Source of the DNA: Auanema rhodensis
Taxonomy: Eukaryota > Animalia > Nematoda
Length of the DNA: 64,000 bases
Assembly (NCBI GenBank): GCA_964057225.1
Contig: OZ059894.1
Span: forward strand, 16,306,001 to 16,370,000
Reading direction: 5' to 3'
Each line of letters begins with the position of its first letter. Positions within the stretch are counted from its first letter, which is position 1. The notes beneath the pieces are model-generated. The model saw nothing but the letters and a program-made list of their open reading frames with translations, was not told where the DNA came from and searched no databases. The translations under genes were made by a program, and so were the position numbers. Positions 16,974 through 55,493 of this stretch are shown here, in pieces.

Positions 16974-17180
16974 GGTGAAACAATGACAATTATAACATCC
17001 GCGTCGACAACGACAACGACGACGGCGACGACGTCGTCTACGCAAGCTGGTATACCAGACATCCGCGCGCGGAGAAGGATTCACGCATGTGACACTGGCA
17101 ACTGAGGCTATTCGCTTGATGAACAGACAACGGCTACGTAATGCAGCAGTTTCGAGATACGTGGGAGGGATGGAGAACAT
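16974..17180 (-). CDS. Candidate alternative first exon of the zinc-finger gene, Arg/Cys-rich
   Basis: ttttcttcag acceptor 12 nt before the ATG at 17180, 69 open codons, then a strong phase-0 donor acc|gtgagt compatible with the exon starting at 10783. Confidence 0.4.
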
Positions 17181-20100
17181 TTAACGATAATTCTGAAGAA
17201 AAACTAAGTGAATAAGAACAGAACAGAAGGGCAAATGGGTTGGTAAAAGGATACATCTGTACCGAAAAACAGTAAATGAATACGATAAGCATTGAAAGAA
17301 TAGATTCAAGAGTAGACAGGGAATTGAAGTGAAGGTAGTGCTTGCCAATCGACATACATACGATCACGCAGCGTGAGTGAGAGAGTAATAGAGAGCAGAG
17401 GAATAGAGAGTAGAGAGGTGCAGGAGAAAGTAAGTAAAAGAAAAGAGAACAGTAATACAGAGAAACAGAAGAGATAGAAAGAGAAAACGAGACAGAGGCT
17501 GTATACGTTAACCTCTTTGAGTAACACCCTCTTCAGCTGCACTACATTCCTAACAGAACTTTTAGTTAGTGGAACACAACATTGTCCCGACCATATAGGG
17601 CACTGTTTGCCAGAAATATTTGGATTTATCTTTCTTTCTTTATTTCTCAGACTTTCTAATGCTCTATACATGCCGTGTATCTAATGCTCAAAGAATTAGA
17701 AAATAAATAAGAATAGTATTCGAAATAGGAGATAATAGACAGTAAAATAATCTGAGAATATCGTTGAGATGCTAAAAGAATGGCCAACGTGTATGTAGAA
17801 AAAGTAACCGAGTTATGTCAATTTTCTCGGAAAATTTAGCTAATACTGACAATGAAACTTTAAAAAGCTAGTTGAAGTATTATGACTTGCTTAAATTTAT
17901 TTGACAAACACATTCAGAGAGCTCAAACTAATATTCGAAGATAACGTGGAATTGCACATACGGTATGTAGGCCAAATGTGGAGCGAGGACGTGGAGAAGA
18001 TTGTTGTTAACTAGCTCCGAATATTCTGAATCGAATCAACGGGATGTGAACAAGAAGAGGTGAAAACACAAAATATGCATTGAGATAGTATAGAAAAAAT
18101 TGTTTCATTTGTTTCATCATCAACCGTCTTTTGTCGTCAATCGACGTCAGATAATCAGCTCTAAGCCTTCAGAAGGTGTTGTACATTTTGTAATAAAATT
18201 TGTAATGTCAACAAGCAACACACACGAGGTCTTATGTCTTCTTACAGCCTCTTTGTTTCTCTGTTTCTCTAACATTTTGCTATCTGACTGTGTTGACTTC
18301 TGGTAGAATTTGACGACTGTTGCTGAGACTGCTCAATTCTAACGGCTGCTCAGCCACACACACACACACACACACACACTCTTCCTTTCTTCCTGCGTTA
18401 ACCACGTTCTGATTCCATATACTATTCAAATGTTTCAAATTAAATTCTGAAGTAAAGTAATTGATAAGTTGGATGAGAATCAAGTGTTGAAATACATTCC
18501 AACCTTTTCTTCTTTCAGTGTCTGTCTCAGAAATTGAGATTCAATTCTGACTTTTGCTCTTTTATGTGTCTACAGACGGCTTTTCCGTTTAACCAGATGT
18601 GATTTTCCGGTTATACTAAACGCTGAGCACACAGACAGCACATAGGAACTAGAAGTTAAAAGTATTTCAATTGAAGATAACAGAGAAAAATGAAGAACCA
18701 TCTGAAGGTGAATTAATGAACGATAGACTAACGTGAAAAGAATAAAATAAATGGATTGTAATACTACAAGGGTAAAAGGATATTGACATAACATCATCGA
18801 TATATGATATAGAAAAGAGCCAAATATGACAAACATAATGTTTCAAGTGATTTAATTGAAAAAGAAAACGTATATGAAATTTCAAACATAAAATAATTAT
18901 ATTTCAATAGAAAATATTCTAATTATACTATACATACGTATAGATAGACAAAAAAAAAGATTGATATATATACAGAGACAGAAATAGAGAGAGAGAGAGA
19001 AAGAGACAGAGAGAGAGTAATATTACCATATATATTGTAATAACTGTATTGTAGATTGTAAAAAAAGGTTGGAATCTGTGGGACGGAGGACGTACGGACA
19101 ACATCAAGCGACAGGCAAACGATGGATGGAAGAGATTATATCGGACGTATACACGTTACCATCAACGTCCTCCTCTCCTCTTCCTCGTCCCTTCGGTCTC
19201 TATAGTCTCTCAATCTCTGTCCATCCATACGTATAATACTCTTGTCATTCAAGTATTTGATATAAATCAACTGTATAGTTGATATAGTTATATATAGTAC
19301 AATTGAAATAATAATGAAGTTATTAGTATAATTACTCCATTTTCAATTAAATGATTCATTATAAATTGTACAATATAATATAGACAAAGCGTAATGAATC
19401 GTTCATGTACTTTCAAACATCAAAATAACATTGTATTTCAAATGCTTATTAGAATAAACAGCTAAAATACGAAATTCACGTGAATCACGTAAGGATATTT
19501 TCATTTCTCTTTCTGTTGCCGCAAGCTTCGGTTGGTTCTTTAAGTTCCTTTCTATCTTGTCTACTCACTCATTTCTGTTCTCTTTTATCCTTTTTCTAAC
19601 TTCAATATCGTTATTCTAAATCTCTAAATCTCTTTATTTTTTTTTCTCTCTCTCTATTAATCTTTTCCTCTTTCTCTCTCTATTTCTCCCACTTTCTTTA
19701 TTCGTTTATTATCGTTTTGGCGCATTTCGGTAAACTTCCGGCAACGGAAGGGCATGAATATATTGCATGCATTGGATCACTTGAACTAGTGACCACAATT
19801 CCGTCAAACGTGACAGTTATGTTGTCGAAGCAAAAAAAAAAAGAAATTAGTTGATGACCCTTCACGCCTTTCTCAACACAGTAGCTCTCTCACTCTTTCT
19901 CTCTCTCTCTTTCTCTTTCTCTCCTCCTCTCTCTCTTTTTTTCTCTCTCTCTCTATTTCTCACTCTCTCTCTCTCCTAATCTAATGATATGATTAAAAAA
20001 ACAATTTTTCTCTTTTTATTTAAAAAAAATAATAAGTTCAAAGGGCACCGAAACAAATAATTGGACTGTTTATAAGTGTTTCAAATCGAATTGAAAAGAT

Positions 20101-21923
20101 ATGGACAGGATAGGTAGGATAGGTAGGATAACAGGAAATTTCAATGAATAAAACAAGAAATAGATGAGCAGGATGAATGAATTTTTCATACCAAATGACT
20201 GAAAGAACGATCTAGGATGAAAATCAATAAGCTTTTCCTTATTTGGAAAAAATTCTGAAACTGTGACTAGTGCTTAGTGCAAGTCGCACATTAGGATTCA
20301 CGTCTGAAAATTTCAGATGAAGAATATCTCGTAAGTGTACGATAAGTCCTATCAGTCTAATGAATTCAAGCATTCTACTGGAGATTACGGTCCAATTAAG
20401 AAAAGGTTGACTAGAGATAGCTAGATGTCTACTGACTGGATGCCTCTGCTAAGCAGCATGATCCAACGATGGCCATCAAATGACCCGTTTGGCCAAGTTT
20501 TGTGTTCAGTATTTCTACGCTCACCAAATGAACTATTGAATCGACGGAGAGGGGTTAAAGTGATTTGTGAGATTATCACATCGTTATCGTTCTGATGATA
20601 GTTAGAGTAAAGAAGCAAAGTTGTGGTTTCGTTGTTCTGCAAAATTACCTTTTCTAGGCACAGTGACGTTACTTTGACAAATGGTGCGCAAAACAAAGAA
20701 ATTAGAGCAACAGCTTCTTATCACCACAGCTCCGTATAGTTTACAACTTAGAAGAAAATGAATATGACTACAGACTGTTAGAAGTAGGTCGATTTAGGAC
20801 ACGAGAGCTCTCAATAGACAAAGAATAGGATCATCGTGTTGGTGTTGGATGATGTGGTAAGGGGGGCTGGGAGTTAGATATAGGCAACAGGGTTCGACCA
20901 CTCTTGGACCGTTTATTTGCGTTCAGTTGATCGATATTTCAGCCCCAGATTACTGCAGCTGTCGAAAAGCTCGAATGAAAGTGTGCTCTTAGTCCAACTG
21001 GATTAGATTAAACGGCTATGTCTCTTAATGGTACTCATCTATGTCTAAGCTTATCAAAATTTAAAAAGTTGATGAGAGATGATTGAAAGAATTCATAAAT
21101 TGATCATAATTAGTAAATTTCAGTAGTAGATATTGAAGATGTTATTGGAAATGTGTGGGTGACTGAAACTTCTATTTAGACATTGGAGACAACGACGACG
21201 GCAAGACAGCTTCCATCCGTCGTCTGTCTGTCAGTGGAGACATTAAAAGAGAGTGGGAGGATAAACCTTGACTCATATACGGAACCAGCTTCTTCTGTAT
21301 TAAATGTTTCAAAAACTTTCCACGAGACTTCATGAGAGGGAGAAATGAAAGGAGAGACGCGACTAATGTCTAGTCAACTCGCAGATTACAAAACGATTGC
21401 ACGACAAACATGAAACATAGTTATTTTAATATAGTATAATCTGGTTTAAAATATAATTAATTTTTGGTCACTATTTATATGAAAAACATATATTATTCCT
21501 AATATATTTCATTTTAATATCATTTTAAACTTTCTTAACTATAAAATGAAGACAGACACTGAAGAGGAATGTTACAATAAGTAACTAATGAAGGGTAGAG
21601 CAATGGTGTGTGTGTCTGTGTGTGGTGAAATGGAGGATGTCAATTCATTGTTAGTTAAACTGAACGATATCAAAGCCAATATCACTAAATCTTGAACAAC
21701 AATGATTACATACTGCAAAATTAATGAAGATTTTCGTTCGTTTTAATATAAATTTTTACATTCAATTCAATTTTTCTTTCAAATCTCAATGATCCGAAAT
21801 TACAAAAGTTCATTAAACCGAACAGTTACACATTATTGACGTTCTATACGTATCTGTCTCGACGTATGCTTAGAACGCTAACATACTGAACTAGCCAGCA
21901 TCATAGCTTACCCTAACACTCAG

Positions 21924-21940
21924 CCCCCCCCCCCCCCCCC
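21924..21940. repeat. Poly-C tract
   Basis: About 17 consecutive C. Confidence 0.95.
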
Positions 21941-22293
21941 GCTTTGGTTCCTATGGTCTTTCTACTAACATACACACTACATCCCAACCTACTATCGACC
22001 CTTTGCGAGGTCACTCACACTAACATCAACCGACCCAAATGTGTCTTATATTACTATAACCATAACCTATTCTTTTTTTTAATTTATACGTTATAGCTTA
22101 AAGAATAATAGTTATATTACTAATAACATAAAAAGGCTAAATTTTGAATTAGAAGAAATAACTTTAGCATATGAATACCGCGATTTTACAAGAACTATGA
22201 ATTATAAAAATTACAAGAGAATAGAAAGAAGAGAGAAATAAGAATATCGCAACCATTCAATTACTTTCATTACCGGAAAATATGAATAGCAAA

Positions 22294-22334
22294 TGACGTG
22301 TGATTCACGTGAATTTTACGTGAACTCTACGTGT
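22294..22334. repeat. 11-bp-period ACGTG array (4 copies)
   Basis: ACGTG starts at 22296, 22307, 22318 and 22329. Confidence 0.85.
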
Positions 22335-23881
22335 CGAACATTGATTATCTTTTTAGTATATTTAACCAAAAAACACACACACACACAGATCTAACATGAA
22401 GGTATCTGGATATTTGGATAAAAATCAATTTTTTTTGCTGCTGCATATAATGGATCACAGACCGTTCCTCAATGGCGGGGTCGGAATTGTAAGCAAAAGG
22501 TCGCCTGTGCCCAAGAGACCCAGTATTCGTAACAGCTGAACATACTATATCAGCTAAACGGTGAGTGTGCTGCTGTTGGTGCCGCAGAGGTGGTAGGTGG
22601 TGAAAGGAAAATGGAAAAGGGAGCAAAAACGAAGGAGGAAGAGGTATAGGCTCAATCTACGTCAGGCTACGACAATCGGCAATTGCTCAACAAAGACGTT
22701 CCGTTTTAATATCATTTGGACAGTCTGTTTGGGAAAAAGCGTAGTGAGTTTGTGGATGAAAAGTGAAAAGTGAAAAGTTGAATATTTTGAATGAAATGGG
22801 TTAATATATAAAAAAGTTAAATATATATATATATATATAATATTAAATATGAATATATAGAAATTTTATGGAAAAATAGAACATGTGCCTGATAGCGGTT
22901 TTGTATGAGATGGAAAACATGGACAGTATTAACATTATGATGAAGATAACCAACAGCGATCAGATGGTGTTGTTGATGAGGACGATGTGAACGTCTCTTC
23001 TGAATATCCGATTGTGTTCAACAAGCGGATGTCCGCTAATTGCTGAACGATTTCGGCTACTGACAAAGACAGAATAATAAATCGATTGATCATCCTGTAT
23101 ATGTAGATATATATTATATTATATGTTTATAGTATATAGTATAAGATACACATATACATATATCGTATATTCTTCACAGACGGATTCAATCTTAAAGCTA
23201 CAGACGGCAGGATAATACAATGTCGGTACCTAAGGGAGTTGTTACGCTTCTGAAACATTGTGTATTCGGTAGAGAGTGTAAGAGAAAAATTACACAAAGT
23301 ACTTCGTTAGTATGAGAGTATAAGTCAGATTAAGAGACTTAGACTGTTACTCATTTTTGACGACCCATACGGGTTAAGCGTTCCGGCACATAGAGCTAGG
23401 TTAGACCGGATTACTGGAATAACATGCAGAGAATGGATGTGCAAAGATTAAATGAAACGCTTGGATAACTCAAGCATTGCAAATGCTTAATATACTGTGA
23501 GTTATATTTCTGGATAACAGTTTTACTAGAATTCGGATTGTTGAGCAAAACGAAATTTAAATGATGAGCTTAGCATACATCCTATAAAGCGTTCATTCCT
23601 TGTCCTCACTCATCAACCACACCCACCAAGCTTTTCCTTCTTCCTCTCTTCCCTCTCGTTTACTCTGTCTGTCCGTTCCGACAAAATCTAAATCGATGAC
23701 CAGCCCAACTCGAAACTGACGAAGAGTGCCGAAATTGGCCTCGGACATAGCTAATTGAATCAGATCGGAACCTTATCCCCTTGTGTGGTATAACCAATTA
23801 CGGTTGTTGCAAAGTGCACAAGCGGGCTAACTGATGAACAAATTTATTCAAAAGCTTTACCCTTTTATTCCCTCTTCATCT

Positions 23882-23901
23882 CCCCCCCCCCCCCCCCCCC
23901 C
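23882..23901. repeat. Poly-C tract
   Basis: About 20 consecutive C. Confidence 0.95.
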
Positions 23902-24607
23902 TCCATTTCTGTTCAATATTTTGGTCGAATTCATAGAAAACACGGAAAAAGTGCATAGTTAAATAAAGGAGGAAAAAGTTATAACAGCTGAAAATTTTGG
24001 GAAAATTAAATGTTTCATTTGGCTAAGCTGCGTGCCTTGAAAACTGACTGAATCATGCAAATTTTTATTCTCTTAGTCTCTCTCTCTCTCATGTAAATAT
24101 TCCCTCTTAATTTTTCTTCGACTTTTTCTAATTCACTTCATGTCTGCTACTCATTCTCTCATTTTATTTTAACAAGCTGGCCATATTTGAGAGTTATCGT
24201 CTAAATACTAAAGGCTATTTCAATGAATGAAAACTGGCGACGAGAAGAGCAGTTAACAGGAGAGAACAAGCATTGAACAGAGTGATGCTACTGCTACACA
24301 ACTACAACTACGATAGGCTAACGATTAGTTTTGTCAGATGTAAAATACATCAATTGATTTATAAAAGGACAGAAGCACAACAAGGCTCTTGGCTATGACC
24401 AAATTAGGTTTCAATCTATTGCCAATGAGTCCTGTCTAGCTTCTGGTTTTGCTGAATGTAAGCTGTGAATTAGATATAAGCTTTGAAACCAATCGATTAA
24501 TGAACAAGGAAAACGACAGTTAATGCATATGAAGTCATGAAACACAGACAGTAGATTCGTTTTCCACAAATTCATAGTTAAATATAAAGACAGATACAAC
24601 AAGCAAG

Positions 24608-24624
24608 AGAGAAAGAGAGAGAGA

Positions 24625-24686
<62 letters not shown>

Positions 24687-24687
24687 G
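24608..24687. repeat. (GA)n microsatellite
   Basis: Long, near-perfect GA dinucleotide run. Confidence 0.95.
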
Positions 24688-24962
24688 ACAGTTTGAGAAA
24701 TAAAAAAAGAATAAGCTAAAAAACGTCAGTAATTAGTATGATAGTTCTGCATAGTATATAAAGATATATGTATGTACATTGTGAGTAAAGCAAATCACTT
24801 GAATTGATAGATTCCTAATGAGGAAATGCGAAAGGTCAAGGAAGGGGTCAGGCCACATACAACTGGGTTTGGGGCTGATGATGCCTAGGTTATACGTATG
24901 TATGTCTGCGTGTGTGCGTTGTGTATGTGTTGTATGTTTGATGTGCTCAATCAAGGCCTAAA

Positions 24963-24979
24963 CCCCCCCCCCCCCCCCC
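24963..24979. repeat. Poly-C tract
   Basis: About 17 consecutive C. Confidence 0.95.
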
Positions 24980-27042
24980 TCTCCTGTCCACACCATCTCA
25001 TCAAGCTACACCAATATCATCAATCTATTCATTCATTCACTATACATAGTATGTAAAATGACAGTTATGAACTTCAGTACAGGTGAGAGCTGAGAGCATC
25101 AAGAGGTATTTCATTTCATTGGACATGAAGTGAACAAAGGGCAAAGAGAGTATTTCAATGAAAAATCGTCTTTTCTGAGAAATAACATGAGCAATTTCAA
25201 TAAATACTTAGCAAGGTTTAAAAGCAAAGAAACAAATTGAATGATTATTCGAATGAAACAAATTTTCAAATTGAAATGATTACTGTATAGCCTGCCGATA
25301 ACTCTCGGAGCGTCCAGTAATTAGAATGAAAATTTGAAATTAAATGTTCAAATTAATTCGAAAATAAATGTGAACAAAGTATAGAGAAGCTATACGTCGA
25401 GGAGGTAAATGAGGTTGTAGAGATAATAATACCGGAGTTTGGGATGGATAAAGAGTTCGGAGAGAAGGTCGTTCGGGTTGAGTTGCACACATACAGCAGG
25501 TTGAGTTCACTGATGAGATATTAGAGAGATCAAAGAAAAAAACAAAATGAGATATAAAAAATAACTCTAATAAGATAGAGAGAGATAACAGAGAAGTAGA
25601 GACAGAGATAGAGAGAGAAAAGAGGGGAGGTTTGGAGGGTTATGTCTTACTTCCACACTATGACCCCTGCACAGACGACAACCATTTATTGTAGAAATAG
25701 CATGGTTAAGCTAGAGAGAATGACTGGGGCCATAGTCATATTACACACAACACGCAGATTCTGCATCTCTGACCTCTTCTAACCCTTTCTACAGCATCCC
25801 CCCTCCTTTTTTCACTTTACACAACATCCAACCACCACATACAGCCCTACCACAACGATAGACCAAAATGAACGGAAGCAATGAATTGAAGTTGATGATG
25901 TCGATGATAAAGGTGATTGAAATGTAAAGAAATGAGAGGCATATCGAACCTTTTACCCAATCAACAGAAACAAGAACATTCTTTGATTTCAATTGATACT
26001 GTCTGGTAGACCAGGTAGTTGCAGCATCAGTTACCCTCTTTCTCTGTTCTAATGAAGTTTCATTTCTCTATCACTGTATCTTTCTTTTTCTCTTCATTTC
26101 ACTCTCTCTCCTTCTTACTCTCTTTCTACCTCTCTTCTTGATTCGACGTGATAGCTACTGCTCCTTTTCTCTGTTCCATGCAGATTCAACTTGATGATTG
26201 CCCTTGTGAATGCCACACGTAATCTGGTAGACAGCATTCCGAGAGAAACATGAGAAACACACAAATAAAGAAATAAAGAGGGAGAGAGAAAGAGAGAAAG
26301 GCTCAGATCAACAGTTACTACAAGAGAATTACAGACGGAAATTTGTGTATAGTACAAGAGCCGGTAATATAGGAAAGATCAGACGTCTGACAAGCTGCTG
26401 ACAAGATGATTCAGATATTTCGACCTATTCATAAGCTAATTGTATCAACATTATTCTAACCGCATCCATGCTAAACTAGATACAAATATATAAAAAAACG
26501 TTTGATTCAAGGGTATATAAGATCTTCTATTGACTATTCAAGTTCGTAAGTTCAAATTCATAGAAAGGTTATATAAAGAAGGATTATAATATTCAGAATA
26601 AATTATATATAGTTAGTTTATTATAATTATCTAAATAAACATAATTTAAAAGTAAAAAAAAAAGTATATTTCTCTTATAATTATAGTTTTAATTAAAAAA
26701 TAAAAGAAATATGAATAGTCAATAGATAAAAGCATTACTATCTTTTACCAAATCACTTGAAATTTATCTTCTAAACTTCAAACTATCTCGAATTAATGTT
26801 GTAAAGAAGAGCTTACAAAACATGGTGATATAGCACTGACTATGGTAGACGAGGAAAGGTAGAGAAACAGAGAAACACGTCCCACACAGCTCAGCTAATC
26901 CTAGGGGAAAGAGTTATGGGTCTGTGTAGAGCTACTGCGGTGCAATTGCCATTCGACCGGCTGGCAATTTTTTGTATTTGGACCCTTCTGGCTGTGGGTT
27001 CCAACGGGAAAATAGACAGAAGGTTAGATATAAGACAGATGG

Positions 27043-27093
27043 TGCGTGTGTGTGTGTGTGTGTGTGGTGAGTGTGTGTGTGCGAGTGTGTGTG
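27043..27093. repeat. (GT)n microsatellite
   Basis: Directly visible, interrupted. Confidence 0.85.
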
Positions 27094-30000
27094 TTACTCG
27101 TGGTCGTTTGTGGCCTGGTTTGACGTTAACGCTCGTGCTCGAACTCAACGTGGGATGACAGAAGGGCTGAACGTAGCAGACAGAGTGGTTCTGGTTGGTA
27201 TTACTACTCAACTGGCATCCAAGCTATATTCTAGAGGCAAACGAATAAAAGAGCTTTCACATAATTTAGCAAGATAGTTATTGAATTGTTAATTATGTGA
27301 TTAACCATCGGTAAACTAAGAACAGATCGCATAATTTAGAGGAAATATGCAAAAATTCAGTGGAAATAATTAAGAATGAGACGGAAATAATAAGGTAACT
27401 ATGTTGAATTCAACTTTCTTTTTCCCTAATAGGCGAACAAAATCGAACTAACCTCAAATATAGTTAGCAAATATATAAATTAAACAAATAACTAATCAAA
27501 AAAGTGAAGAACAATGAAATATAATAAAAGGCATGCAACATGAATGAATAAAAGATAGATGGGGGGGCATTGAGGATTGACTTGTCTATCCAATAGACGT
27601 CTCAAGTAGGTGTTAATTATGCGATTACTTAGTTTGTTATATACACATATTAACTATACGTTATACAATAAACTATGTGACTTATTCTCTCATAAAATTA
27701 AAGATTGACACTCAACAGGATGTTGTATATATCTACTTATCTAAATGAGAAAAACAACAAAGAAACATGTAGGGATGAGCTTGGCAAATAAAAAAGAAAA
27801 TGCAACCGTTTTCGGCTTTTAGTAACAGAAGAAATGGATTGATTCACGTGATACACTTTTACGTGAGCATGTATATGTGAATCAAGTTGGTACCAAAACT
27901 CGAAGAAGAAGAAAAAGGTTACAACTTTCAGTTAAAAAAAGGTTTCGAATTGAATTCTTTGGAAAGAAAAAGTTTCAGCAAATGAGATCATGAATGAACA
28001 ATTCGTATGGTAATGTATAGAGAATAGTGAAAGGACAATACATATAACAATATGTTTTAACATGATGATCCAATACTCTATCATATGTATCTTCTATCAA
28101 GTTAGTACATTAATTCAATATTAAAATAAAAAAGAAAACAAATATAATTAATAATAAATAACAAAAAAATAAATCAATATCTTAATTATATTATATAGTT
28201 AAATAAAATTAAAATAAGTAATATAAGAATGGATCAATCAATTAGTATTTATATAAAATATTTAATAAGATGTTAATAAGAGTTAGTTGTAGTTTTGTAT
28301 TTGGAGTGTGCACATAAGATTTTGAAATTAAAAAGAGAACATAAACTTAAAAATAAAGTTAACATATACTTAAGAAGATTATTAATATTGAACTTTTATT
28401 AAGTTATATTCTAAATATTATGATAATACTAAAATGAAGATCAATTCATCATAAACTATGCTAGTTAGTACAAGTTAGTTCAATTTTCTATTAAAATAAT
28501 TTATATTTAATTTAAAATTAAATTTAAAAAAAAGGTTCAAATAAAAGTTTGAAAATAGAAATTTTATCATGAAAATGATTTTTTTTGTTAAAAGAAAATT
28601 GATATACGATATGATAAATAGTTAATAGGTGCAGAAAATTGTTGGTTAAAGGTTTCAAATTAATGAATGTTTCAAGAAGAAAATGATCAAGAAAGAAAAA
28701 AAAAACGAAAGAACGGTAGAATGAATAGAGTATGAATGAGAAAAGAAGACGTCTCAATCGAAAGGAATGACGATAAAAAACGGGAATCGTCGACTTTGTC
28801 CATCGTAGTCCATCGTCGTAGCCGTTGACGAAGTCGTCGTCTGGCTGGTCTCTTTTTCTATTAGTTTCAGTGATAACGTTGATGATGATGCTTGTATACA
28901 TAGGATGAGGCATAGTAATAAGAGTAAAAGTAATAATTAATAATAGTTTAATAGATATATGTTATTGTAAGGTTAATATAAAAAAAATTATTATAAGAAT
29001 AAACTTTTTCAAGGATTACTAGTTATTACTAGTTGTATTCATAATAATATTCATAATAACTATTATTATTATATTACAATTACAATTGAGAATTATTTTT
29101 TATATTTCCCAAAAAAAATTTAAAACTGGACAAAGTTTGTGAATTGACGAGCCGGAAACGGTATTTAGGTTCTTGTTAATCGATCAGTACAAGTGGCCAA
29201 ACTGTAATACCGATTCATTGAGTTCTAACCAACTGATCGGCTTATGGACAAGTTCTGTTTAATCATAATCTCTAATATTTGGAAAGAGTAAAACAGCTAG
29301 AATATAAGGCACCGATAGAGAGTAATGGGAGGGGGGGGGAAGATGGGTGGCAACGAGCGATGGGGGGACCCAGAGTGGGAGAGAGTGGTAAACTAAGCAG
29401 GTTCGTTCTGTGGTTCAGGTAACTCTAGAACCTTTTTGATCAAATCCGGCAATCCAGCAGACAATGAGATAGAAGACAATGTGCTGAGCGAAAAAGAGAG
29501 AGTATGGATAGGCAGAGAACATCATGCATATCCGCAATGAAACACAAGAGGATGATGCGACAACAACGACGACCACAACGACGACGACGACGAAGCCAAT
29601 GCATTTCGAGACATAGACATTGATTAGCGTTTCGTATGATACGGAGACAAATGATGTGCCAGCAAGCAAGCCAAACCATTATCTACGACAGCAAAATGAT
29701 TCTGATCAAAATCTGCGATGAATTTATTGTTTAAAACAAGACATCTATCTGCCAGATTATCGATTAATCCAATTGACAGAATAACAGAATTTTCATTGGT
29801 TGTTGTATATATATATATACTATATATACTATACTATACTAGATATATAATCAATTTGAATTTTGTGTCTTTTATAAAACATATATGAAGAGAATAAGAG
29901 AAATAGAGACAAAAAAGAAAATACGAGAATGTGAGAGAGCAAGAGAGATGGTGCACTTTGCCCTTAATTAGACGGACACGCTCCACAAAGTTGGTTTCAT

Positions 30001-32610
30001 AAGCAATGAAAATTAAGCTTTTGCTCTTAACTATTGAATATAATTATATTCTGAGATATTAAAGTGGTAAATATGAGTATATAAGCATTCACAATTAAGA
30101 AATGTTTATTTAATTATAATTATAATTATTATAAATAATATTTTAAATATAAATATATATATATGTAAATTCACAAACATATATATATATATACACTTTT
30201 GAAACCTAACTGTATGCATAGTTCGTCGAGCGTTGATGTATCATGATTGATGATCACCAACCATTTTGAATATTAAAAACTTAAATGAAAGCATTATATG
30301 GATGTCATCAACATATATGATTGTTTGGTTTTTCATATTTAAAATATAGTTAGCTATATCATATGAATATAAAAATAATATATAATAATTGAGATAATTC
30401 AGAATTACAGATGAATTTCTTATACTATAACTTATATTATTATTATTATTATTATAATGATATTTAGATATAGTTAGGCTGCAGATTGATAGATCTCTTG
30501 TCTTCAAAATCTAAGTTTCCAATAAAGCCATATATGACGGAAATAGAAAAGAAAGATTAATCGTTGATATACAATTACTACAGTTGATTGAATACTCTGA
30601 TTGTGGGATTGCCTTGATCGTTTGAATAAGGAGATCGTACAAACAGTTTAGTTGATTGCATAGTCGAATTTCAAGTAAGATGGCCGCATTAATCGAATTC
30701 AGAATTTTAGAACATCACTTAAAAGCGTCAGCAGCAACCAGTTTGCAACGATAACATTAAAAATATGAATGAGGAAGATCATATTTTATTACATAGAATT
30801 ACACACCGGTAATGGAAAATAAAGTAAGATTCGAAACTTGCTATCATCGATGCTTTCAGTTATTGCTGCAGATATAACAACAGAAGAGAGTAATGTGGTA
30901 GTGATGGTGAGAATGGACTAATGATTACCCACGTCCTTGGTATCTGGTATAGTTGTAGCAGAAGAGGAGGAGAGAGAACGAGAATCAGAAGACAACGTGG
31001 AGGAGTACAACGGCATTTCTTTCAATCAAATGGCTATTACGTTTGTCTTGACGAAAAATAATCATTCGTGTGGTATAAGAATACGGTTAAACGATAACTA
31101 AATACTTCTGAAAATCAGTCTTTTATGAGAATTTTGATGGAATGTGTATAGTTTGACCAACAATCACGTTTAACTAAACGTGATTGTCAATACTTCTTAT
31201 ACTTATGATGAAGATGATGATGGCAAGAATGATAATACGAATGTTGAAAAAAGGAAATTATTGATAATTTTCATGAAGAAAAGCATCAAAAGGAAAAGGA
31301 CATTCAGAGGGATGATGTCGGTAAAGATGCTAGCAGACACGATAGGTGCTGATAATTGATCAAATTGAACGTAAAAATTAGTTGTCTGCCAGACACTATC
31401 GATGGACACACGGTTTTCAAAGCCTAATTAGAGACGAGAAAACGTTTCTCAGCGTTCCTTGATATGATTTTCACTAAATTCCTTCTGGGGATCATATAGA
31501 AAATTTGAAGAAAAAACGGGAAAAGGTGTTTCCTCGAAATTACAAATAGTATAGTCTATACTATATTGTATAATAATAAATAATTTATACATATATTCTC
31601 CGAAATTTAACCTCCGTTTTCCAACATAACAAACTTTTTAGAATAATGAACAAGTTGGATTTTCTAAATTGTTATCTGACGTTCAAAAAGTTTTTGTTTT
31701 AGCAATGTTTGTCTAACACTTTCTATCAGCCCTAACATCTTTTTCGTTATTTAGTCAATATCTCAGTAATGTTCTTACTTCAAGTTATAAGCCTTTTTAA
31801 CATTTCTATCAAGATACAATATCTTTTCTATCTTTCGAACTCTTCACTATCAGCAAGTCTACGACAATCCTAACACCTAGAACCAACTTGTCTCGACGGA
31901 CGGACGGAAAGACGGACAGACAGACGCCTGTCCTGTTGTGTAAATCCCGCACATTCGTTGAGACCAGATTTCACAACATTGGTTCAAACTTGCCCCGCTC
32001 TAGCTGTAAACCTTTACGAGATGTCCGATTTTTTTTCTGAAAACCTATTGCAAGAACATCCAGAACTTCTTTTTCTTTCTGGAAAAATCAATGCAACTGA
32101 CGAATGTACAAGTGGCACAAAGAGTTAACAAGGACAATCCGTAGCATTTCCAAGGGATCTCAGAAACTTTTTCATTTTTCCCATAAAATAGTGTATGAAA
32201 TACTATCGAGCAAAGACAACATATCATCACATTTCTCTCAAAAAAGTGCGTAAGAATCATCATCATAACACAGCTGATTAGAGGAAAATCTCTCAATCTA
32301 TTATAAAGATGATAATAAAACTAAAATAATCTGAGAGATATGTGAGACCATTAAATTTCTTAAAAAAAAATGAAAAATTAGAAAAAGATATTTAAGTTTA
32401 CTTAGTACATGTGAACTTCATTAAGCATAATTATTTTTTTTACAAGAAAATAAGTAAAACATTCAAAAAGAAAATTTGAAACATGGAATATCACAGTAGA
32501 AATCTTTGAGATCATTGAGATTGTTCTTATAAGCAAGGGGGTTAGTACATTTTTTTCAAAAAAAAAAAAATAAAATGTTTAAAGTAAAATGAAAATACTA
32601 GAAAGTATTT

Positions 32611-34302
32611 TTAGAACAATGCTGATGCAGAGATGGCAAATACGAGCAAACCAGATATCAATGAAGCATAGCCTGCTGTTGATACTGGAGAATCGAGAAC
32701 ATCCATTACATGTCGACGTTGTTCTTCATCATTTTCCTCATCAGCTTCCACTCGTGCATAGTTTTCTAATTAATTAATAAATGTATATGTAAATCATATA
32801 ATTATTAAATTTATATGATACCTCTTCTTTCGAATCTTGCTTCAGCATCTAATTCATCAGAATCATCTGGTAATTTAACCTTTGGATTTTCAGAATCAGC
32901 TAACTTGTATGGGAGAACATGAGCCTAAAGATTATTAAATTACAAATATATTTGTTTTCAAACACTAACCGCCATAATTTTTGCTAAACTTTCGAAATCT
33001 GGAGTGGGCATGGGATTTCTTTGCCAATCAAACATTGAACACTGTAAAGTACGAAGTTCGCCATCAATTAACAGAGCAGCTTCAATAGGTTCTGTTGACA
33101 CAGATTCCATTCGATTTATTGTACGAATTTCATTATTTATCAGTATATCTTCATTGGTTGAAGGAATTGTTTCTACGTTGTATTTCACCTGTAAAGTCAA
33201 AAAATATTTTTTCTTTCTTTATGAAATCATGGATCGAAATCCTCAGCCATGAATTCACAAACCTGTTCTTTAACTGTTGACATGACTGATAACGGTCCAG
33301 AAGAAGTGGGATCGTTTGGGAAGGCAAAAGCAAAATTCTGAAATCAGATAGATTCCAACAAAAGCTATGTCATACAACAATAGTAAAGATTATTCAGATT
33401 TTCGCAGTTGAAGTCATACCTCGTCTTTACAAGCCTCTGGAACAATCCAATCAAGCATCTCTTCAAATCCTTGATCTTCACCCTTCATCATTGAAGAAAT
33501 CAATGTATCAACCAAATTTGTCTGCCCAACACATTTCTTACCCAAACGATCTTTAAAGCAATGCATCAAACACATGGTTGAACTGAAATCAAAATTATTT
33601 GGATGATAAAATACCTTTTATTCAAAACATCTCTTACTTGCACATGTTTTTAACATCAAAAACTTCATTTATCTGATTAGCTGCAGATGCTTGATCGATA
33701 AAACGGGACTGAAGCTTGCAATAACTTTCACATTCAGGTTGCAAATCTTCAGAAGCATTTTTAATACATTCAAGAGAATCTCCGACAGCTGAAATTTAAA
33801 TTTTCAAAAAACCTCAGACCTATAGTTTTATGTCTTACATTCTATATTTTCTAAACATACAAACTGAAAAAGTTTGGCGGCTGTTTCGACAAAAATTGTT
33901 GAACAGCCAGCGTTAACAGCACAACGAGCAGATTCTTGTAATTCACTGAATTAAAGACAAACAATTACTATACTCAGATATTTTTAAATTATCTATGATA
34001 CCTGCATAGCTTACTTACAGCTACTGGATCATTATTTCCTTTCTTAATAACTTTGAACATATCTTCCATATGTGGAATACATGTAGCAAAACATGATGGC
34101 ATTTGAAATGTCGACATCAATCTGGTAACATTCATTGGACCTTTGAATGCACCTAAAAATAAAATATATTCCAAAGATGCAAGCTCAAACACATGACAAT
34201 ACCCATTAATTCAGAAAGAAAGTTAGTCGATGAAATAGGCTGAACTGGATTTGTCAATGCTCCATGTCCAAATATCAGTAGGATTAACAGTGTTAATTGC
34301 AT
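32611..34302 (-). CDS. Secreted/GPI-type protein with chondroitin proteoglycan 4 (CPG4)-like Cys-rich domain; 9 exons
   Basis: Signal peptide MQLTLLILLIFGHGALT; Cys pattern PSCFATC...KLC...ARCAVNAGC...FVC...LECI...PECESYC...MCNSTMCLMHC...KKC...IVPEAC; acidic linker; hydrophobic C-terminus ASLISGLLVFAISASALF*. All introns are GT-AG and in frame. Confidence 0.8.
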
Positions 34303-34823: not shown

Positions 34824-34866
34824 AGTGTCATCTCATTTTCATTTTTAATTGGTTATATCGGTTGAA

Positions 34867-35070
34867 ATGGTTGTTTCACCATCTTCTTCATGTGATTCTG
34901 ATTGGGATTTAAGAAAACATGACGAAGATACATTATCGTCTGGAAGTTCTTCATCTGAAAGTCTTTTGACAGTGGCACATCATCCAGTTGTAAGATAATT
35001 ATTTAAGATATATATTTAAGATATTATAGTTAACGTTAACACCTCCATCAACACCTGAAACAATAGCTGT

Positions 35071-35101
<31 letters not shown>

Positions 35102-35694
35102 TTGTATAAATATATGAAACTAATCTATATTTATTATTTCAGGATAATATTACTGTGAGAAATCGGAAACGAAAATTGTAATAAATTCCTTTATGTATCA
35201 TTTTTAATTTTTATATAATTTTAGGCCTAAAAAAAATGAAAATGTAGATGAAGTAAGTATTATTGAAATTGAATATTTTGTATAAAATATAATGTTTAGA
35301 ATCTAAGTAAGAATGTTAATGCTCAATGGCAATCAGAAAATAAGTTACAAAAAAAGAAAACAAATATCAAGTTTGATTTACCAAAGGTAAATATTACAAA
35401 TAAAATGAATAATAATAATAATTGTTTTCGAAAACATTTGAAAGTTTGGTTCGTCAAATCATCGAAGAAACCTCAGGCAAGGACTATATGAGAATAACAT
35501 CAGACGCATTAGATATCTTACAAGAAGTAATATTATTTTATATAATATATTTATATTTATAATTATAATTATAGAATGCAGAAAAATATATAACTTATAT
35601 GTTTTTTGTTCAAAGTCAAATGATGTTTGTTAATGGACAAGATTGTTTACAGATTGAACTATTCCGAAGTTATCTAGTCTGCAAAAACTTATAA
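34867..35694 (+). CDS. Highly divergent histone H3/CENP-A-like histone-fold protein (about 175 aa); 7 exons
   Basis: Exons 34867-34989, 35030-35068, 35143-35177, 35225-35252, 35300-35386, 35431-35526 and 35575-35694. The C-terminal part FDLPKKTFESLVRQIIEETSGKDYMRITSDALDILQENAEKYITYMF aligns with H3 [45 protein letters not shown]. This model needs a CG acceptor at 35429-35430. Confidence 0.72.
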
Positions 35695-36104
35695 TATTAT
35701 CAATTGTAGCTGAATAACTATACTAATTGTTACAATATAGTTAAATATATGTTATAAATAAATGTAATACATTTTAACTCTTATAATACTAAGAATAATT
35801 CGAAACATAACCAATATAAAACTAAAAAAGTTTCTATTGAAATTTTAATTTTTTTATAACAATTCATTGAGAGATAATAATCATGATTTGCATAATATAT
35901 TAAATATAAGTTTAAAATATGATTTTTCTAATTATTTTATATTATATTTTATTAATCATTTCTAAATTATTCTATTGTAACTCAGCTGTCAATCAGTTTA
36001 AGTTATTATTCATTTCATTATTTCAATCTTGAAAACGTAGATTATTATATAGTTCACAATTATTTCTTTCAAATATCAAGTTTCCATGTTTTTATTTAGA
36101 GAAG

Positions 36105-36372
36105 ATGGATGTAGATTGGAGTGATCCTGATTCACAGACGAAAGTGCACAGTTTATACAATACTCACATTGATTTTGGTATAGCTTTGTTTGGTGATGTA
36201 AGTAATTTTAATATATTTTAAATTATATATCCTTAAGACATTACCTGCAAAGGATCGAAAAGCTGAATATTATATTACAGTTATATTATATACTGTGGTA
36301 TTATTTTTTACTATATTATTTAATACTTTATTTTCTATTTTATTATGTCTTTGTCCTAAACACTTTCGAGAG

Positions 36373-36407
<35 letters not shown>

Positions 36408-37916
36408 AATATAATATAAATTAAGAAAACATTTGTTAAAATACTATGGCATGTTGTTATTTCTAATTTTTTATCAGCAATAAGTAATGTTGTTGTAACA
36501 CTTCCTGTAACATTATTCAATTTTGATGCAAAAGAATTTAAAGATTTTAAAGGAACAGGTATACATACTACAATGAAATCTAATAATTTATTTTGTTTTT
36601 TTTTAGTTATTTACAGAATATTCAAACCATTAACATCATTTTCTGTAGAATTAAATCTTTTATTAAGCTTTGTTATAGCTCTTCAAAGGCTGTTTGTTTT
36701 TGTATCTTCCAGATTAACAACATTAATATTTGAAGGGTAAATTTAAATATAATAAATTGTATTTATAAATATATAATTAAAGATATATATTCTATATAGT
36801 TATGTTAACAGTATGGATTCTTACATTTTCAATTACTTTCTTATATGAATATTTCTCTTGTTCATATGTATATGATGATAAATACTATATGTATAGATAT
36901 ATATGTGAAATGAATGAGAAAACTGCTTTAATGCTTAGTTCAAAAGTTGAAATGGTTAAAACTAGTTAATATATAATAATTATTATTAATATGTATTTAT
37001 TATAGTTTGTCATTTTACATAATTTGGCTATTCCTATTATAATATTTATCATTTATATTATAATATTTATTCGTATATATAAACAAAGACGAGTTATAAA
37101 TGCAGTAAAATCAATTACATTTGAAAAAGAAATATTGAAACAAGCATTTATTCTTTTTTTAGCTTTTGAAGTAAAATTTATTATTATTTATAATTTATTT
37201 TAAAATTTTATTTTTAGTTAGGATCACTGTTCTCTATTTATATTCCAAATAGAGAAATTAGATCCACAACAGCTTTTCTATATAATCGAATTGACATGAC
37301 TGTATGTTTTCATTTTGATTTTTGATTTTTTTGATATCATATACTATGACCACGTACTTATTTATACTAATATTATACTAAATATAAAATATTAATATGA
37401 AATGAAAATAATTAATTAATTTTTCAGTTAGGCTTATTATCTGGTGCTCTAACGCCAGTTCTCTCAATCGGAGCATGCAGTGAGATTCGAAATGTTTTAA
37501 ATTTTAAAACATTGAAAAAAACTAAAATAGCAGCAAAAGTTGCATCATCTATCGTAAGCAATCTTTGTAAATCGTGGGTCTTATTCCGATGTCAAATCCA
37601 TACTTGATATAAGTATGTAACAAATAACGTTGTATAAGTAATATTTTGATTTTTACATAGATAGAGAGAGGGAGAGAGAAAATGAGAGAGAGGGAGAGAG
37701 AAAATGAGAGAGAGGGAGAGAGAAAGTAAGAGAGAGAAATAAATATATTTTAAAAAATAACGGAATAAGTACCTCAAACATACATTTACACATGTATATT
37801 TAAAGAAAAAACAAATTTATTCGTATCTTCAGAATTTATTGTAGGATGTATCACCAACAAACATAAACTTGGGAAACAATCGTCCATCTTCTAGTTATTC
37901 GCAAAGCTCTGATTAA
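36105..37916 (+). CDS. Serpentine chemoreceptor GPCR, class X (Srx)-like
   Basis: Eight or nine short exons join in frame, giving about seven hydrophobic segments with FVIALQRLFVF, CSYVYDDKYYMYRYIC and FEKEILKQAFILF motifs. The 3' end is ambiguous: read-through stop at 37607, or a last exon 37845-37916 via atc|gtaag. Confidence 0.8.
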
Positions 37917-38089
37917 TGGAATTACTTTTGATTGAGATGTTTGATATTATTATTTTTGTTTATTTTATTTCATACAAATATTTAATTTAAATAATAAATC
38001 TTTAATATGTTTGTTTAAATTTTGAATAAAAATAAATTCATATTTTTGACGTCAATCATTTTTTTTTTATTTTAAATTTGACATTGAAG

Positions 38090-40751
38090 ATGATTCGGTC
38101 GGTCGAATACCATGATGTTGAATTACATACAACAGATAATGAAATGTATATCATTCATATTAAAGTTTTAAATTAAAATAATTTTAATTTAAAGATTTCA
38201 ATGGAGGGAAAGTGAAATAATTCGATTTATTCCATCACTTATAAATATATTACCAACAAAACGTGGACAGAAACGTATTCAATTATTACTAGATGTTCCA
38301 TTTGATTTATATATAGTAATATACATATACTTGATAAATATATTCATATATATATATATATGATTATATACATATAATATTATAATTTAGATGAAAATAT
38401 TAAAAGAATTTTCTCAAAAAGGATATATTAATGATCAATTATCATTTAGTGATTATGAATATATGTTGAAATCAATTCAACAATTTCCAAAACATGAAAT
38501 AAGAATGCTTGAAGTAAGTTGGATATAGATATTAGAATGTAAATGATAAAAATCATTTTAGGATCATATATTTTCAATTTTATATAAAGATATTTGTAAT
38601 ATGAATTGTATAGGTTTTTGGTTTCTAGCCATAAAATATGAAAATGAAGAATATATTAAAAAGGTAAAAAGAATATGAAGAAAATGACTAATATGTGTAA
38701 TTTTCGGCCAAAATCTTTATATTAGATAATATTTTTCGTGCTTGTGAAGATAAATCAATAGATTATCATTTTTACAGTAGGTAAGTACTATGAAATATAT
38801 TTTATTATTTTAATTATACGTAAATATTAGATTAACAAAAGAACAACTTGAGGATATTATATCAGATAATGAATTAAGTATAAATACAGAAGAAGATGTT
38901 ATATTAATTATATTAACATGGATTGGTATTATAATATATATATATATATAGTTAATATACAGTTAATTTATATATTCAGATGCAGTACCTTTAGAACGGA
39001 CAATTTATCTTAAACGTCTGATGAAACATGTAAGAAAAGATGGAATACGAAAGGTTATCTTTAGCTATTTTCAATTTATTAATAAATTTTTATTTAGAAA
39101 ATGAAAGAAATTGTATCAATGTTACAAACAATTCCTGTATCTGAAGTGATATTCAGTTCAGAACCGTCCAGACATTTCAAGGATAAGGTTCTAACTTGCA
39201 GAAGTTATCAAATGAATAATAACATCTTGTATATACAGTTATTGGTTTGTGGTGGGCATCAATACGATCCAGAAACATCTCAATATGGTCCAACAACTTT
39301 AATGGAAATGTATGATTTGGTTTGTTAATTTTATAATTTGAAAGTAAACTTATCTATATTTATAGATTAATAACCGTTGGATTAAACTAGATTCACAACT
39401 TCCCTATTCTATATCATATCATGCCGCTTTATATCTCAATGATGTATTAATTAATAATATAATATATGTTTATATATTGAATTTTAAATATTTTAATAGG
39501 ATTTATATATATTTGGTGGATCAAGTACTAAAGAAATAGCTTCTAAGAAAGGTGTCAAACTTCGAAATGGCATATGGTATCCAATAGCTGATTTGAATCA
39601 ACCAAGGTGATGTAAACTTTTTTAATTATGCATTACATTGGAAGTAACTAAAGAATATAATTGTGATCTGAACAAATTTAAGATTAAAAAAATGAAATTT
39701 ATAATATAAAATATATTTTTAGAAGTTATATCACAAATTCATGTTGTATATATAATCAGGAGTTATATGTAATAGGAGGACATAATGGACATAGACGGGA
39801 ACGTACCAATGAACTATTTGTATGTTATATATAATATAATATTAATTAAATATACTATATACTATATACTATATAATATATAATATATTTATTATTATTT
39901 ATAGGCAATTGCTAATACAAGATTGAAATCAGTTGAGAAGTATAATCCAGTGAAAGATGAATGGACATTTGTTAGGTAATATTTAACTTTTTTTTAAAAT
40001 CTAATATATTGAAAATATGTTTATTCTTATTATTATTATTTATATAATTATATACATGTAATATTTGAGTGAAATGAATTTTGGACGATCAGATGCTACG
40101 TGCTCAGTGCTAAATGATCGCATTTATGTTTTCGGAGGATTTGATGGAGTTAGGGTTAGATTTTTGAATTAATTTTTCGTATAATTAATATGTTTTAGAT
40201 ATTAGATACAATTGAAATGTATGTGCCATCGATTGATCACTGGACTATACTTGAACCACGTCTTCCCAGTCCTCGATCTGGTATTGAATGATGAAGCATT
40301 ATGTTGCATGTTGAAGTTATTCAGGCTTATCATCCGTAGTATATAACGATCATATAGTATTACTTGGTGGATCTGATGGACAAACACGTCATTCAACAAA
40401 CTTTAGCTTTTATCCAAAAAGTGAAAGTTGGACAATTGGTGATGATATGATATCAGCCCGGTATGCAATTGAAATATTTTTGTTAAACAATCATCTATTT
40501 AAGATCAAACTTTTCGGCTTGTAAGCTTGGAAAGAATATTGTGGTTGTTGGTGGATTCAGTCGTAATGTTCTACGTTATAGCGAATTGTAAGGATATTGA
40601 GTAATGAGTGTCAGCATATATTTTTTTAAATTTCAGTCTACATGAAGATCATTGGCAAGAAATAGCTAGTATACGAGCATCCAAGAGTGCTTTAGCTGCA
40701 GTAGTCATACCACATTCTGATGAAGCAAGTTTATTCAGTGTTAAGATATAA
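38090..40751 (+). CDS. BTB(degenerate)-BACK-Kelch repeat protein (KLHL10/KEL-10/SPE-26-like family); about 18 exons
   Basis: BACK segments NCIGFWFLAIKY...AKIFILDN and LTKEQLEDIISDNELSINTEEDVILIILTWI...YLKRLMKHVR. Kelch repeats LLVCGG, LYIFGG, LYVIGG...LKSVEKYNPVKDEW, RSDATCSVLNDRIYVFGGFDG, IVLLGGSDG and RSNFSAC...IVVVGG. Stop at 40749-40751. One intron needs a CG acceptor (38705-38706) and one a GAG acceptor (40067-40069). Confidence 0.88.
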
Positions 40752-43392
40752 CTTAACTTTTTATAAAAATAAATTTGAGGATAAAGAATAAAAATAAAAT
40801 ATTTTTTGCTTTTCATTGTTTTAAAATCTTTTATTTACTTTGTAAATTTAGAACTTTTAGTCATGTTGAGATGTTCAATGTATAGAATGATCTTATTTGA
40901 ATTTAATGTGAAATATGATATCTCATCTTCATCAAATTTTTATTTTATTTTTCAAATAAATAGAAATGATATAACTAATTATTACAATATTAACTATATC
41001 TATATAGTCTATCTACATATTATAGTTGTAATTTATCAATAAATAACAGTTGGTATTTATAAAAAGTTATTCAATTTTTATTTTTTCATAAAATAAATAA
41101 ATTTAAAGTAAAATTAAATTTAATATGAAGATAAGGATGCTGTATTGATGCTTATATGCTTAGCACTTCATCCATTCTTCACCTTCAAGACAGAAATTTG
41201 CCAATTACTGGAAAGAACTGAAGGCTTGTCAACTGGGTGTCTCGAAATTAATCTAAGTCAGAAAAGAATTGAAAAGAAATAAAAGGGTAGAAAGATCATC
41301 AATAAGCTTAGAAATGCTTCAAATGAACATAAAATGATTTTGTTTCTAATTCTAAGCGTTTCTATTATTTACGTTGTTGTTCATATAAGAGTCATGCAAA
41401 GTATTTTTCTTTACTTTTTTCTTCTTTTTCTCAATGAATATACATGTAGATGAGACATTAAGTCAATTTCAAATGAAATCTCTTCTGACAAGAAGCAGTG
41501 AACATGAAAATAGAACATTGTCTATTTAGAGAGTTGAAGATGTCAAACTCAAAGTACTTCCGACTACTTCTTTTCTCCATAATCATCACCGTCATCATCA
41601 TCAGCATCAGCATCTTCATCATCCTCGTGCTTTTCGCTTGTTCTTCTCTAGTATAGAAATATAGAAATTCTTCTATATGAGACTATGTTTCAAGTGTATG
41701 CTCTGAAATATTACTCAATTTACAAGCTTTATGGTTTTTCTTGTCTATAAAGTCCTCATCTTTCTTCAGCTTCATCGCCAGTTGAAGCCTTCGTATTTCT
41801 ATTTTTTGAATATAAATTTATGTTCTTCATTCATTTATCTTATCTCAATCATGTCATGTGTTCTCTTCTCTAATATCTTGACTATCTACAATTTCTTCGA
41901 AACTTCCGAGTTATTGGATATTTATAAGAAATTGGCACTTATAACTGACGTTCACCTCATTTTGAGCTTTAATTTATCTGTCAAATATATCTTATATGAG
42001 AATACAAATGCGAAGACGAATCAAGTCAATTTCTAGGAATGATCGAAGATCTGTTAGAAATGTTCTTCATCCTACGGTTTCCCGTTTTATTCTCTTTATT
42101 ACTTTGAAAAACCCACTTGTATTTTACTTTTTTTTGCAAAAAAAAATAAATAAACTAAAACCAAAACACATATTTCTTCTTTTTTTTTCTTTACTTTTTC
42201 TTTAATTCACCAAAATTGTTTTTGTATGTGTTTGTATACAACGTGGATTATATTTTTTTACGTGAAGATCACACTAAATGTGTTCCATTTACCAAAATTA
42301 GACATAGATAAACGGTTCTATTTCCATTGAATGCTTGCATCATCTTCTTTGCTATATCATCTTAATGCCACCCCCATTTCTCTATTTCTTTCTCTCTATC
42401 TTTGTTTCTCTGTAGCCTTCTCAGGGTTAGTCGCACTCTCATTTCTTACATCTGACACCGCTGCCATACATGGAAGTATCAGCTAGAACATGATGCTCTT
42501 ATACAATTTGTTGCATCTCCTTCTCTTTCTCCGTTTTCTCTTCGTTTTCTCTTCATCATCGTTCCTCTCCTCTCCACCAACTATTACTGCTCCTAACCCG
42601 AAATCGAGTTAAGCCGCATTTTCACGAGACCGTCTATATTGCTGAAGTGAGAAAGAAGAAAAGAGGAGAGTGAAGAGCAACTTAGGCATGTTTGAAGCAT
42701 GTTTTCACTTGTGTTATTCTGTTATATCTATAACATTCTATATGTATAACTTATACAATTTCACATATTCTATAATCTTTTCATAGTCATACCTATCTTA
42801 ATGATTATCAATTCAATTCTATTACTCAATTTACAGTTTATGATGAATCATATCAGACACATCGTAATAACGGCTCTTGTTCTCTCATTAACTTCTTAAA
42901 TCATACTTTGTCACTTATACCATATGAAGACGATAATGATGATGTCATATTTCAAACCAAAAAGTTCCAAATGTCCGACGAAGACTTTTTCTATTGAATT
43001 ATTCAGCAACAATCATCATCATTTTGTACTGCCTTATGTTGGCTGTTTCCTTTATTTCCCCTTTCATCTTCATAACTTTTATTTTTGTTTCAATTTAAAC
43101 CAAAAAAAAAGAAAAAATATTTAAATTTATGTAATAATACTATTTCATATAGTACATATAGTATATATTTGAATTCTAAAAAAAAAGCTGAATGATAGCG
43201 AAGACGCAAGAAGTTTAAAATAAGATTTTGAGTCCTTCCGCTCCTTAATGCCAATGCTTCCAGGCTCGAGAAAAAAGTTTTTTTTTAGTTGTAGATTCTT
43301 CAGTTCTATTTTCATCAAACTAAAAGTTTTTTGCTACAGAAAAATCTTTTTGAAAATCTTTCATTGTTCTCACGTAACCTCCTCCCTTACTT

Positions 43393-54662: not shown

Positions 54663-55493
54663 TTATAGCATAATATCAGTTAAATTTAATTTTACTGGAG
54701 CATTGCAAAGTGGAGAAGCTTTACTAGCTGCATATAATCCATCATTGCAATATCCACAACTATGTCTACATACACGAACAGCAAACTCAGCATCAGCACA
54801 ACTGAATAATTATATTTTTTATGAAGTTTTAACGTACTTAGGGAAAAGTACCTAAATTTTCCGAGTCCAGAAGCTTTGAAACGACGACAGAATGTCAAAG
54901 AATGCTTATCTTTACAAAGTTGTGGAGCCTGAAAATAAGCTTAATTCTTGAAAAATATAAAAGAATTATTTTACTTTGAATAAATGACGAGCATTATCCG
55001 GATGAATCTTATCTGAAAAATGGAAAATCTTTCATGTTTTTTAAAAATTTTCTTCGAAAGCTTACGGCTATCAATATATGCACGACATTCAGCACAACAG
55101 TCCAATGTATGGAAATCGTGGTCATTCAAACATCTGAAATATTTTTTTTATTTTAAAGATTACAGGGTTTTTTGAGAATTTTAAAAATTCAAAACATGAT
55201 TATGTCTTTAATAAACCTTTTTTCAAAAACAGCTGTTTGTGTTTTACGTAATGATTGACAAGCTTGTTCTCCGAAACGGTCCCGACAACAAGGTAAAGCG
55301 GCAGTATCTGAAATGAAACTCATATTACTCTACAGATTTGTAGAATAGTCTAGTTAGAAGTATTATTTGTAATTCAAACATTAAACGAATAAGTTTTAAT
55401 GAAAGTTGGTCTATTAAAAGTTTTTCCATTGACTTTACAACATTCTAACTTTTTACTATTAAACCATAAATATTTTAAAATAATGAATATCAT
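54663..55493 (-). CDS. Small ShK-toxin-like (six-cysteine) domain protein
   Basis: In-frame exons from 55307 downward encode LPCCRDRFGEQACQSL...KRCLNDHDFHTLDCCAEC and LCKDKHSLTFCRRF...SCADAEFAVRVCRHSCGYC (ShKT-type CxxSCGxC end), stop at 54663. The first exon 55439-55493 is only a guess. Confidence 0.75.

Follow-up and report, generated by a model that had tools for sequence, protein, structure and literature searches.

The window analysed here, 64,000 nt of the Auanema rhodensis contig OZ059894.1 read on the forward strand (all coordinates are positions within it), is AT-rich, with a GC content of 22-40%, and carries nematode-type genes with tiny introns. Three genes, encoding an H3/CENP-A-like protein, a serpentine receptor and a BTB-BACK-Kelch protein, lie in a block of 22% GC at 34-41 kb. 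The other well-conserved genes of the window, including a Cys-loop chloride channel gene (~690-3650, + strand), a zinc-finger gene (8350-10786, - strand) and a further one (32662-34269, - strand), have canonical acceptors; their introns end in TTTTCAG or TTTCAG, and AG is their sole acceptor dinucleotide. About 50 introns other than the two described below were curated in the window and all of them were GT-AG, with several kb of coding sequence free of frameshifts, stops and broken splice sites, which suggests that the assembly is of high accuracy at the level of single bases.

Several additional features were recorded along the window. The chloride channel gene is GluCl/GABA-like, with canonical TTTTCAG and TTTTAG acceptors, and its intron after M3 (from position 2961) can be kept in frame by ending it either at TTTCG (45 nt) or at TTTGAAG, 7 bases further on (~52-54 nt, counted by hand). 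A small cysteine-rich gene with a CC...C pattern and a ShK-like look (54693-55329, - strand) contains four canonical introns ending in TTTCAG or TTTTCAG. The serpentine (7TM) receptor gene (36105-37600) sits between the H3-like and Kelch genes, and its introns 1-4 are GT-AG and end in weak acceptors devoid of a T tract (CCTTAAG, AATTAAG, TTAAAG, TTATAG). Positions 11000-31000 form a long purine-skewed stretch (G>C and A>T on the + strand), more GC-rich and with many microsatellites, where the gene finder returned no convincing coding chain; non-coding transcripts, long introns or repeats may account for it. Neither Rfam nor tRNA scanning gave a match in the window.

The BTB-BACK-Kelch gene (38090-40751, + strand) was rebuilt exon by exon and then translated. 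It comprises 18 exons and 556 codons, including the stop at 40749-40751, with no internal stop. Its 17 introns span 43-116 nt: a single one reaches 116 nt, the other 16 measure 43-94 nt, and 43-56 nt is the usual size. All but one of them are GT-AG, the exception being the intron at 38664-38706. Pfam BACK (PF07707) was matched by exon 6 (24.7 bits against a cut-off of 20.9, profile positions 40-70) and Kelch_1 (PF01344) by exons 12, 14 and 16 (26.3, 28.3 and 30.9 bits against a cut-off of 20.1), and six GG-containing blades are recognizable in the translation. As these downstream exons pass the Kelch_1 cut-offs, the frame set at the exceptional junction leads into a normal six-blade propeller. 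No Pfam match was obtained for BTB exons 2 and 3, and the alignment with vaccinia A55 described below covers only the end residues of the BTB domain.

Near the N-terminus, reading through 38146-38176 gives MYIIHIKVLN, which resembles the strand and helix of the BTB "F.aH..VL" motif; a TAA and a +1 shift come next. A 49-nt intron with canonical GT-AG ends (38146-38194, GTATATC...TTTAAAG) would remove these residues and leave an open frame, at the price of a shortened BTB domain. Intron 8 (39188-39238, 51 nt, GTTCTAAC...TATACAG) is in frame and stop-free, its retention adding 17 residues to an unbroken protein. Immediately 5' of the gene, at 37660-37740, there is a tandem (GAGAGAGGGAGAGAGAAAAT)-like purine repeat.

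The exceptional intron separates exon 4 (38562-38663, DHIFSILYKDICNMNCIGFWFLAIKYENEEYIKK), which ends with GAA TAT ATT AAA AAG (EEYIKK) before the donor, from exon 5 (38707-38780, AKIFILDNIFRACEDKSIDYHFYS plus a split R), which encodes BACK helices and starts with GCC AAA ATC (AKIFILDNIFRAC...). Its 43 letters are GTAAAAAGAATATGAAGAAAATGACTAATATGTGTAATTTTCG, with boundaries AAG/GTAAAAA...AATTTTCG/GCC (a slash marks the cut). The donor at 38661-38670 is a GT in a U1-complementary context, and a candidate branch site, CTAAT (38688-38692), can be picked from the sequence 15 nt from the 3' end. A T tract occupies 38701-38704, followed by C at 38705 (-2) and G at 38706 (-1), so that the intron ends in CG. 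Re-reading the sequence gave the same letters and TTTTCG end as the original prediction had described, and two of its other statements, that the intron has the usual size and that the rest of the gene is intact, agreed with the rebuilt model (43 nt within 43-56 nt; 16 GT-AG introns and 556 codons without an internal stop). Its description of the acceptor as a TTTTCAG lacking its A was retained as one of two equally simple origins, the other being a TTTTAG changed from A to C at -2. TTTTAG ends 4 of the 16 AG introns of this gene, and of the two origins only the A-to-C change preserves the distance between the cut and the T tract.

The reading frames around the site were explored by testing all GT-AG, GC-AG and AT-AC donor/acceptor pairs. 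As originally claimed, retention of 38664-38706 leads to VKRI followed by a stop, and the nearby AGs fail: with exon starts at 38681, 38726, 38750 and 38762, a stop is met within 3-14 codons, and no acceptor among those tried with the 38664 donor (AGs 38680-38761) gave an open frame. A canonical solution from an upstream donor (38614-38725, 112 nt) does exist and, as had been stated, costs BACK residues, deleting 23 of them from a segment that aligns without gaps with A55. It is the least damaging GT-AG alternative, but not the sole canonical rescue it had been taken for, as the enumeration returned 18 in-frame alternatives (GT-AG or AT-AC), every one of which deletes 20-55 BACK residues. The 58-residue peptide of exons 4 and 5 was aligned with the BTB-BACK region of vaccinia A55 (PDB 6i2m_A, residues 114-161) over 48 residues without gaps (E 3e-4), and across the K/A junction there is no room for one residue more or one less. 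Since retention, the AGs reachable from the same donor and the canonical alternatives either stop translation or delete BACK residues, the exact K/A junction (38663/38707) is, as judged from the reading frames and this alignment, needed to join exons 4 and 5.

A second GT...CG intron was found 3.3 kb upstream, in the H3/CENP-A-like gene (34867-35694, + strand; 7 exons, 175 aa, five GT-AG introns and this one). It is intron 5 of that gene (35387-35430, 44 nt, + strand), with boundaries AAG/GTAAATA...TGTTTTCG/AAA, a TTTT tract at 35425-35428 and the end GTTTTCG. Both introns have a nematode-type T tract directly before the 3' cut, and both lack a terminal AG, with CG in its place at 38705-38706 and 35429-35430. 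The peptide spanning the H3-like junction matches Pfam Histone with 21.1 bits over profile positions 43-85, compared with 16 bits over positions 58-85 for the downstream exon alone, and a divergent H3 also aligns, though weakly, across this junction. One in-frame AG alternative exists in this gene, at 35482; its use would lose 17 residues inside the Pfam Histone match. The H3-like gene showed no other lesion (stops, frameshifts or broken splice sites).

Other TTTCG sequences of the window were considered as further CG acceptors and discarded: that at 1527 sits inside an exon, and at 3006 and 40517 a canonical AG is available that agrees with the protein. Kelch intron 14 (40155-40198) contains an internal TTTTTCG (40173-40179), 25 nt from its donor, and ends with a normal TGTTTTAG; therefore, TTTTCG is not used at every occurrence. 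An in-house Viterbi gene finder modelled only about six genes well and lacked the sensitivity needed to count non-AG acceptors without bias, and crude ORF-joining scans for such acceptors were dominated by chance.

Sequencing runs were compared with words sampled from 34850-40800. Eight DNA runs from two studies contained 0.98-0.99 of them; 0.99 of the 626 words leaves about 6 missing, and the two CG sites together would span about 6-7 sampled words, but the (TA)n and (GA)n microsatellites present in the sampled stretch explain the missing words equally easily. Four RNA runs contained 0.20-0.26 of the sampled 31-mers of the same interval. By our own arithmetic, Kelch exons wholly enclose about 0.19 of all words and H3-like exons about 0.05, so that shares of 0.20-0.26 would be hard to reach without Kelch exon words; these word shares, rather than junction reads, indicate that the Kelch gene is probably transcribed.

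Searches for homologues were carried out with pieces of these genes. A search for homologous proteins with the stop-free 75-aa stretch at 39101-39325 (exons 8-9) gave no candidate, the candidates being filtered by length and the exons being short, and the same stretch found no relative among 1.8 billion cluster representatives, where the only matches were chance ones to its intron-derived middle. A query alignment of exon 16 with an unrelated 363-aa protein, composed to satisfy the length filter, retrieved relatives of that template only, and a comparison of three ORFs of the window with recorded encoding contigs returned nothing. None of these searches yielded an orthologue or a transcript-derived protein with which the junction could be compared. 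Metagenome contigs scanned for exact matches to exon 5 gave no hit either.

The absence of AG from an intron on which a gene depends could reflect a fresh loss-of-function mutation, AG having changed to CG at an acceptor that is now unused or unproductive, in which case the Kelch gene would be a very young pseudogene or the locus a strain-private null allele. Its transcripts would then retain the intron, with the stop after VKRI, or be spliced to the next AG (38725), with a frameshift and a stop after 11 codons, yielding a truncated BTB-only protein or a target of NMD. This explanation, which we consider unlikely, draws on the near invariance of AG at 3' splice sites and on the character of the gene, which is divergent, with BTB pieces that match no Pfam family and with exons 8-9 lacking any relative in the cluster search, and whose neighbour in this AT-rich block, an orphan H3-like gene, shows the same defect. 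Divergent, lineage-specific-looking genes such as these two, in a 22% GC block, can be decaying, and the in-frame AG at 35482 in the H3-like gene also speaks against the use of CG, as does the exclusive use of AG in the other well-conserved genes of the window. However, no further disabling lesion (stop, frameshift or broken splice site) accompanies the CG in the 556 codons and 16 other introns of the Kelch gene, and its downstream Kelch repeats still score above the Pfam cut-offs. Decay would also require that both neighbours had been struck first at -2 of a T-tract acceptor, and both by an A-to-C change, which opposes the AT-biased composition of the block. Under a random-lesion model in which all single-base disabling changes (nonsense and splice dinucleotide changes) were counted per gene, the A-to-C class at -2 makes up 3.4% and 3.6% of such changes, so that the joint chance is around 0.001 (0.034 x 0.036 = 0.0012), a conservative figure as indels were ignored in the count. 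In addition, the introns of the two genes, 1291 bases in total, contain only four CG dinucleotides, two of them being the terminal pairs.

Two further explanations would restore an ordinary GT-AG intron. In one, the assembly or its consensus is wrong and the true DNA reads TTTTAG or TTTTCAG; the approximately six words missing from the best DNA runs could be precisely those over both CG sites, yet such an error must have hit exactly position -2 of two acceptors while about 50 other introns and several kb of coding sequence stayed clean, and the agreement of eight runs from two studies, together with the microsatellites as an equally easy source of missing words, makes it quite improbable. In the other, splicing proceeds from an upstream donor (as in 38614-38725), so that the end of exon 4 and the start of exon 5 would be intronic and the first BACK helices absent. 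The resulting introns are in frame and GT-AG, but the protein would lose at least 23 residues of the ungapped alignment to a solved BACK domain, the introns would measure 112-166 nt, a size attained by just one of the 17 Kelch introns (116 nt), and their donors (ATAG/GTTTTT, AATT/GTATAG) are weaker than AAG/GTAAAA; we regard this as very improbable. Altogether, a random assembly error or a fresh pseudogenisation suits two identical lesions in otherwise clean genes poorly; what is left is an acceptor that is real and tolerated or else some systematic artefact. A recurrent type of error by which AG at splice sites becomes CG is not known to us.

The explanation that we favour, with some confidence, is that 38664-38706 would be a genuine intron of the major (U2-type) spliceosome with a CG 3' splice site. 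As the neighbouring H3-like gene carries the same oddity, A. rhodensis probably splices at CG. That the cut is made there in vivo, as well as its efficiency and the step at which the site would be recognised, we infer from the letters themselves. The 3' end would be set by the strong donor (AAG/GTAAA), the fixed short length and the T tract abutting the cut, with the terminal G kept and C tolerated at -2. The most likely and simplest origin of TTTTCG is an ordinary TTTTAG altered by the single A-to-C change, the site remaining usable, and the Kelch gene would thereby still yield a full BTB-BACK-Kelch protein. Recognition might depend on U2AF bound to the U tract, or on a tolerance of the second step towards a non-A at -2 provided that G-1 is kept. 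During the second splicing step, G-1 at the acceptor is paired to the first base of the donor (G+1) and A-2 to the branch adenosine; given these pairings, the retention of G-1 with a change at -2, found in both CG introns, would be the mildest possible departure.

More tentatively, both introns might represent a class of constitutive introns, spread across the genome, in which the T tract at the 3' end is followed by NG, N being C in most of them and T or G in others; position -2 would then have been relaxed in this lineage. If this were so, the reader of the 3' splice site (the U2AF small subunit or second-step factors) could be altered, or the 3' ends of tiny introns could be defined by length and T tract alone. 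Few signals in eukaryotic genes vary as little as the terminal AG, which is read twice, early by U2AF35 and then through non-Watson-Crick contacts in the second catalytic step; a worm in which constitutive introns have CG as their sole acceptor would be a natural experiment on which of these readings can relax. Gene predictors limited to GT-AG and GC-AG introns would split or truncate such genes, the Kelch and H3-like genes included.

Regarding known systems, the encoded protein resembles KLHL and poxvirus A55-like adaptors in its BACK and Kelch_1 matches, its six GG-containing blades and its alignment with the BTB-BACK region of A55, and differs from them in the strong divergence of the gene, with BTB exons that match no Pfam family and exons 8-9 without close relatives. 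Non-canonical terminal dinucleotides are also a property of U12-type introns. In contrast to these, the 43-nt intron at 38664-38706 has the donor GTAAAAA, and neither the U12 donor [AG]TATCCTT nor the branch box TCCTTAAC was found in it; for this reason, we do not regard it as a U12 intron. Nematodes are not known to possess a minor spliceosome.

No paper on recurrent GT-CG introns in a nematode was found in the literature searches, and a re-annotation paper on Heterorhabditis described GC-AG donors only. The human U2-type TG 3' splice sites (PMC2374985) are similar in that G at -1 is kept and A at -2 replaced; those sites, however, are alternatives in tandem with AG, whereas here no AG partner gives a productive mRNA. 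Closer precedents come from C. elegans, where a tract of TTTC is enough to direct splicing at TTTCAA, a mutant acceptor with AA in place of AG, and three natural acceptors ending in TG, AT and GG are used in the germline (Ragle et al. 2015, PMC4484395, citing Aroian et al. 1993 and Zhang & Blumenthal 1996). These sites share with the present introns a short nematode intron, a T-rich tract abutting the cut and a non-AG terminal dinucleotide, but they are mutant alleles or germline-preferred alternatives adjacent to a strong AG. In the present case, a constitutive intron would depend on CG as its only productive acceptor, and the same form recurs in a neighbouring gene. C. elegans offers a precedent for non-AG acceptors, and the use of CG in A. 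rhodensis would carry the older mutant finding made there over to genes of the wild type.
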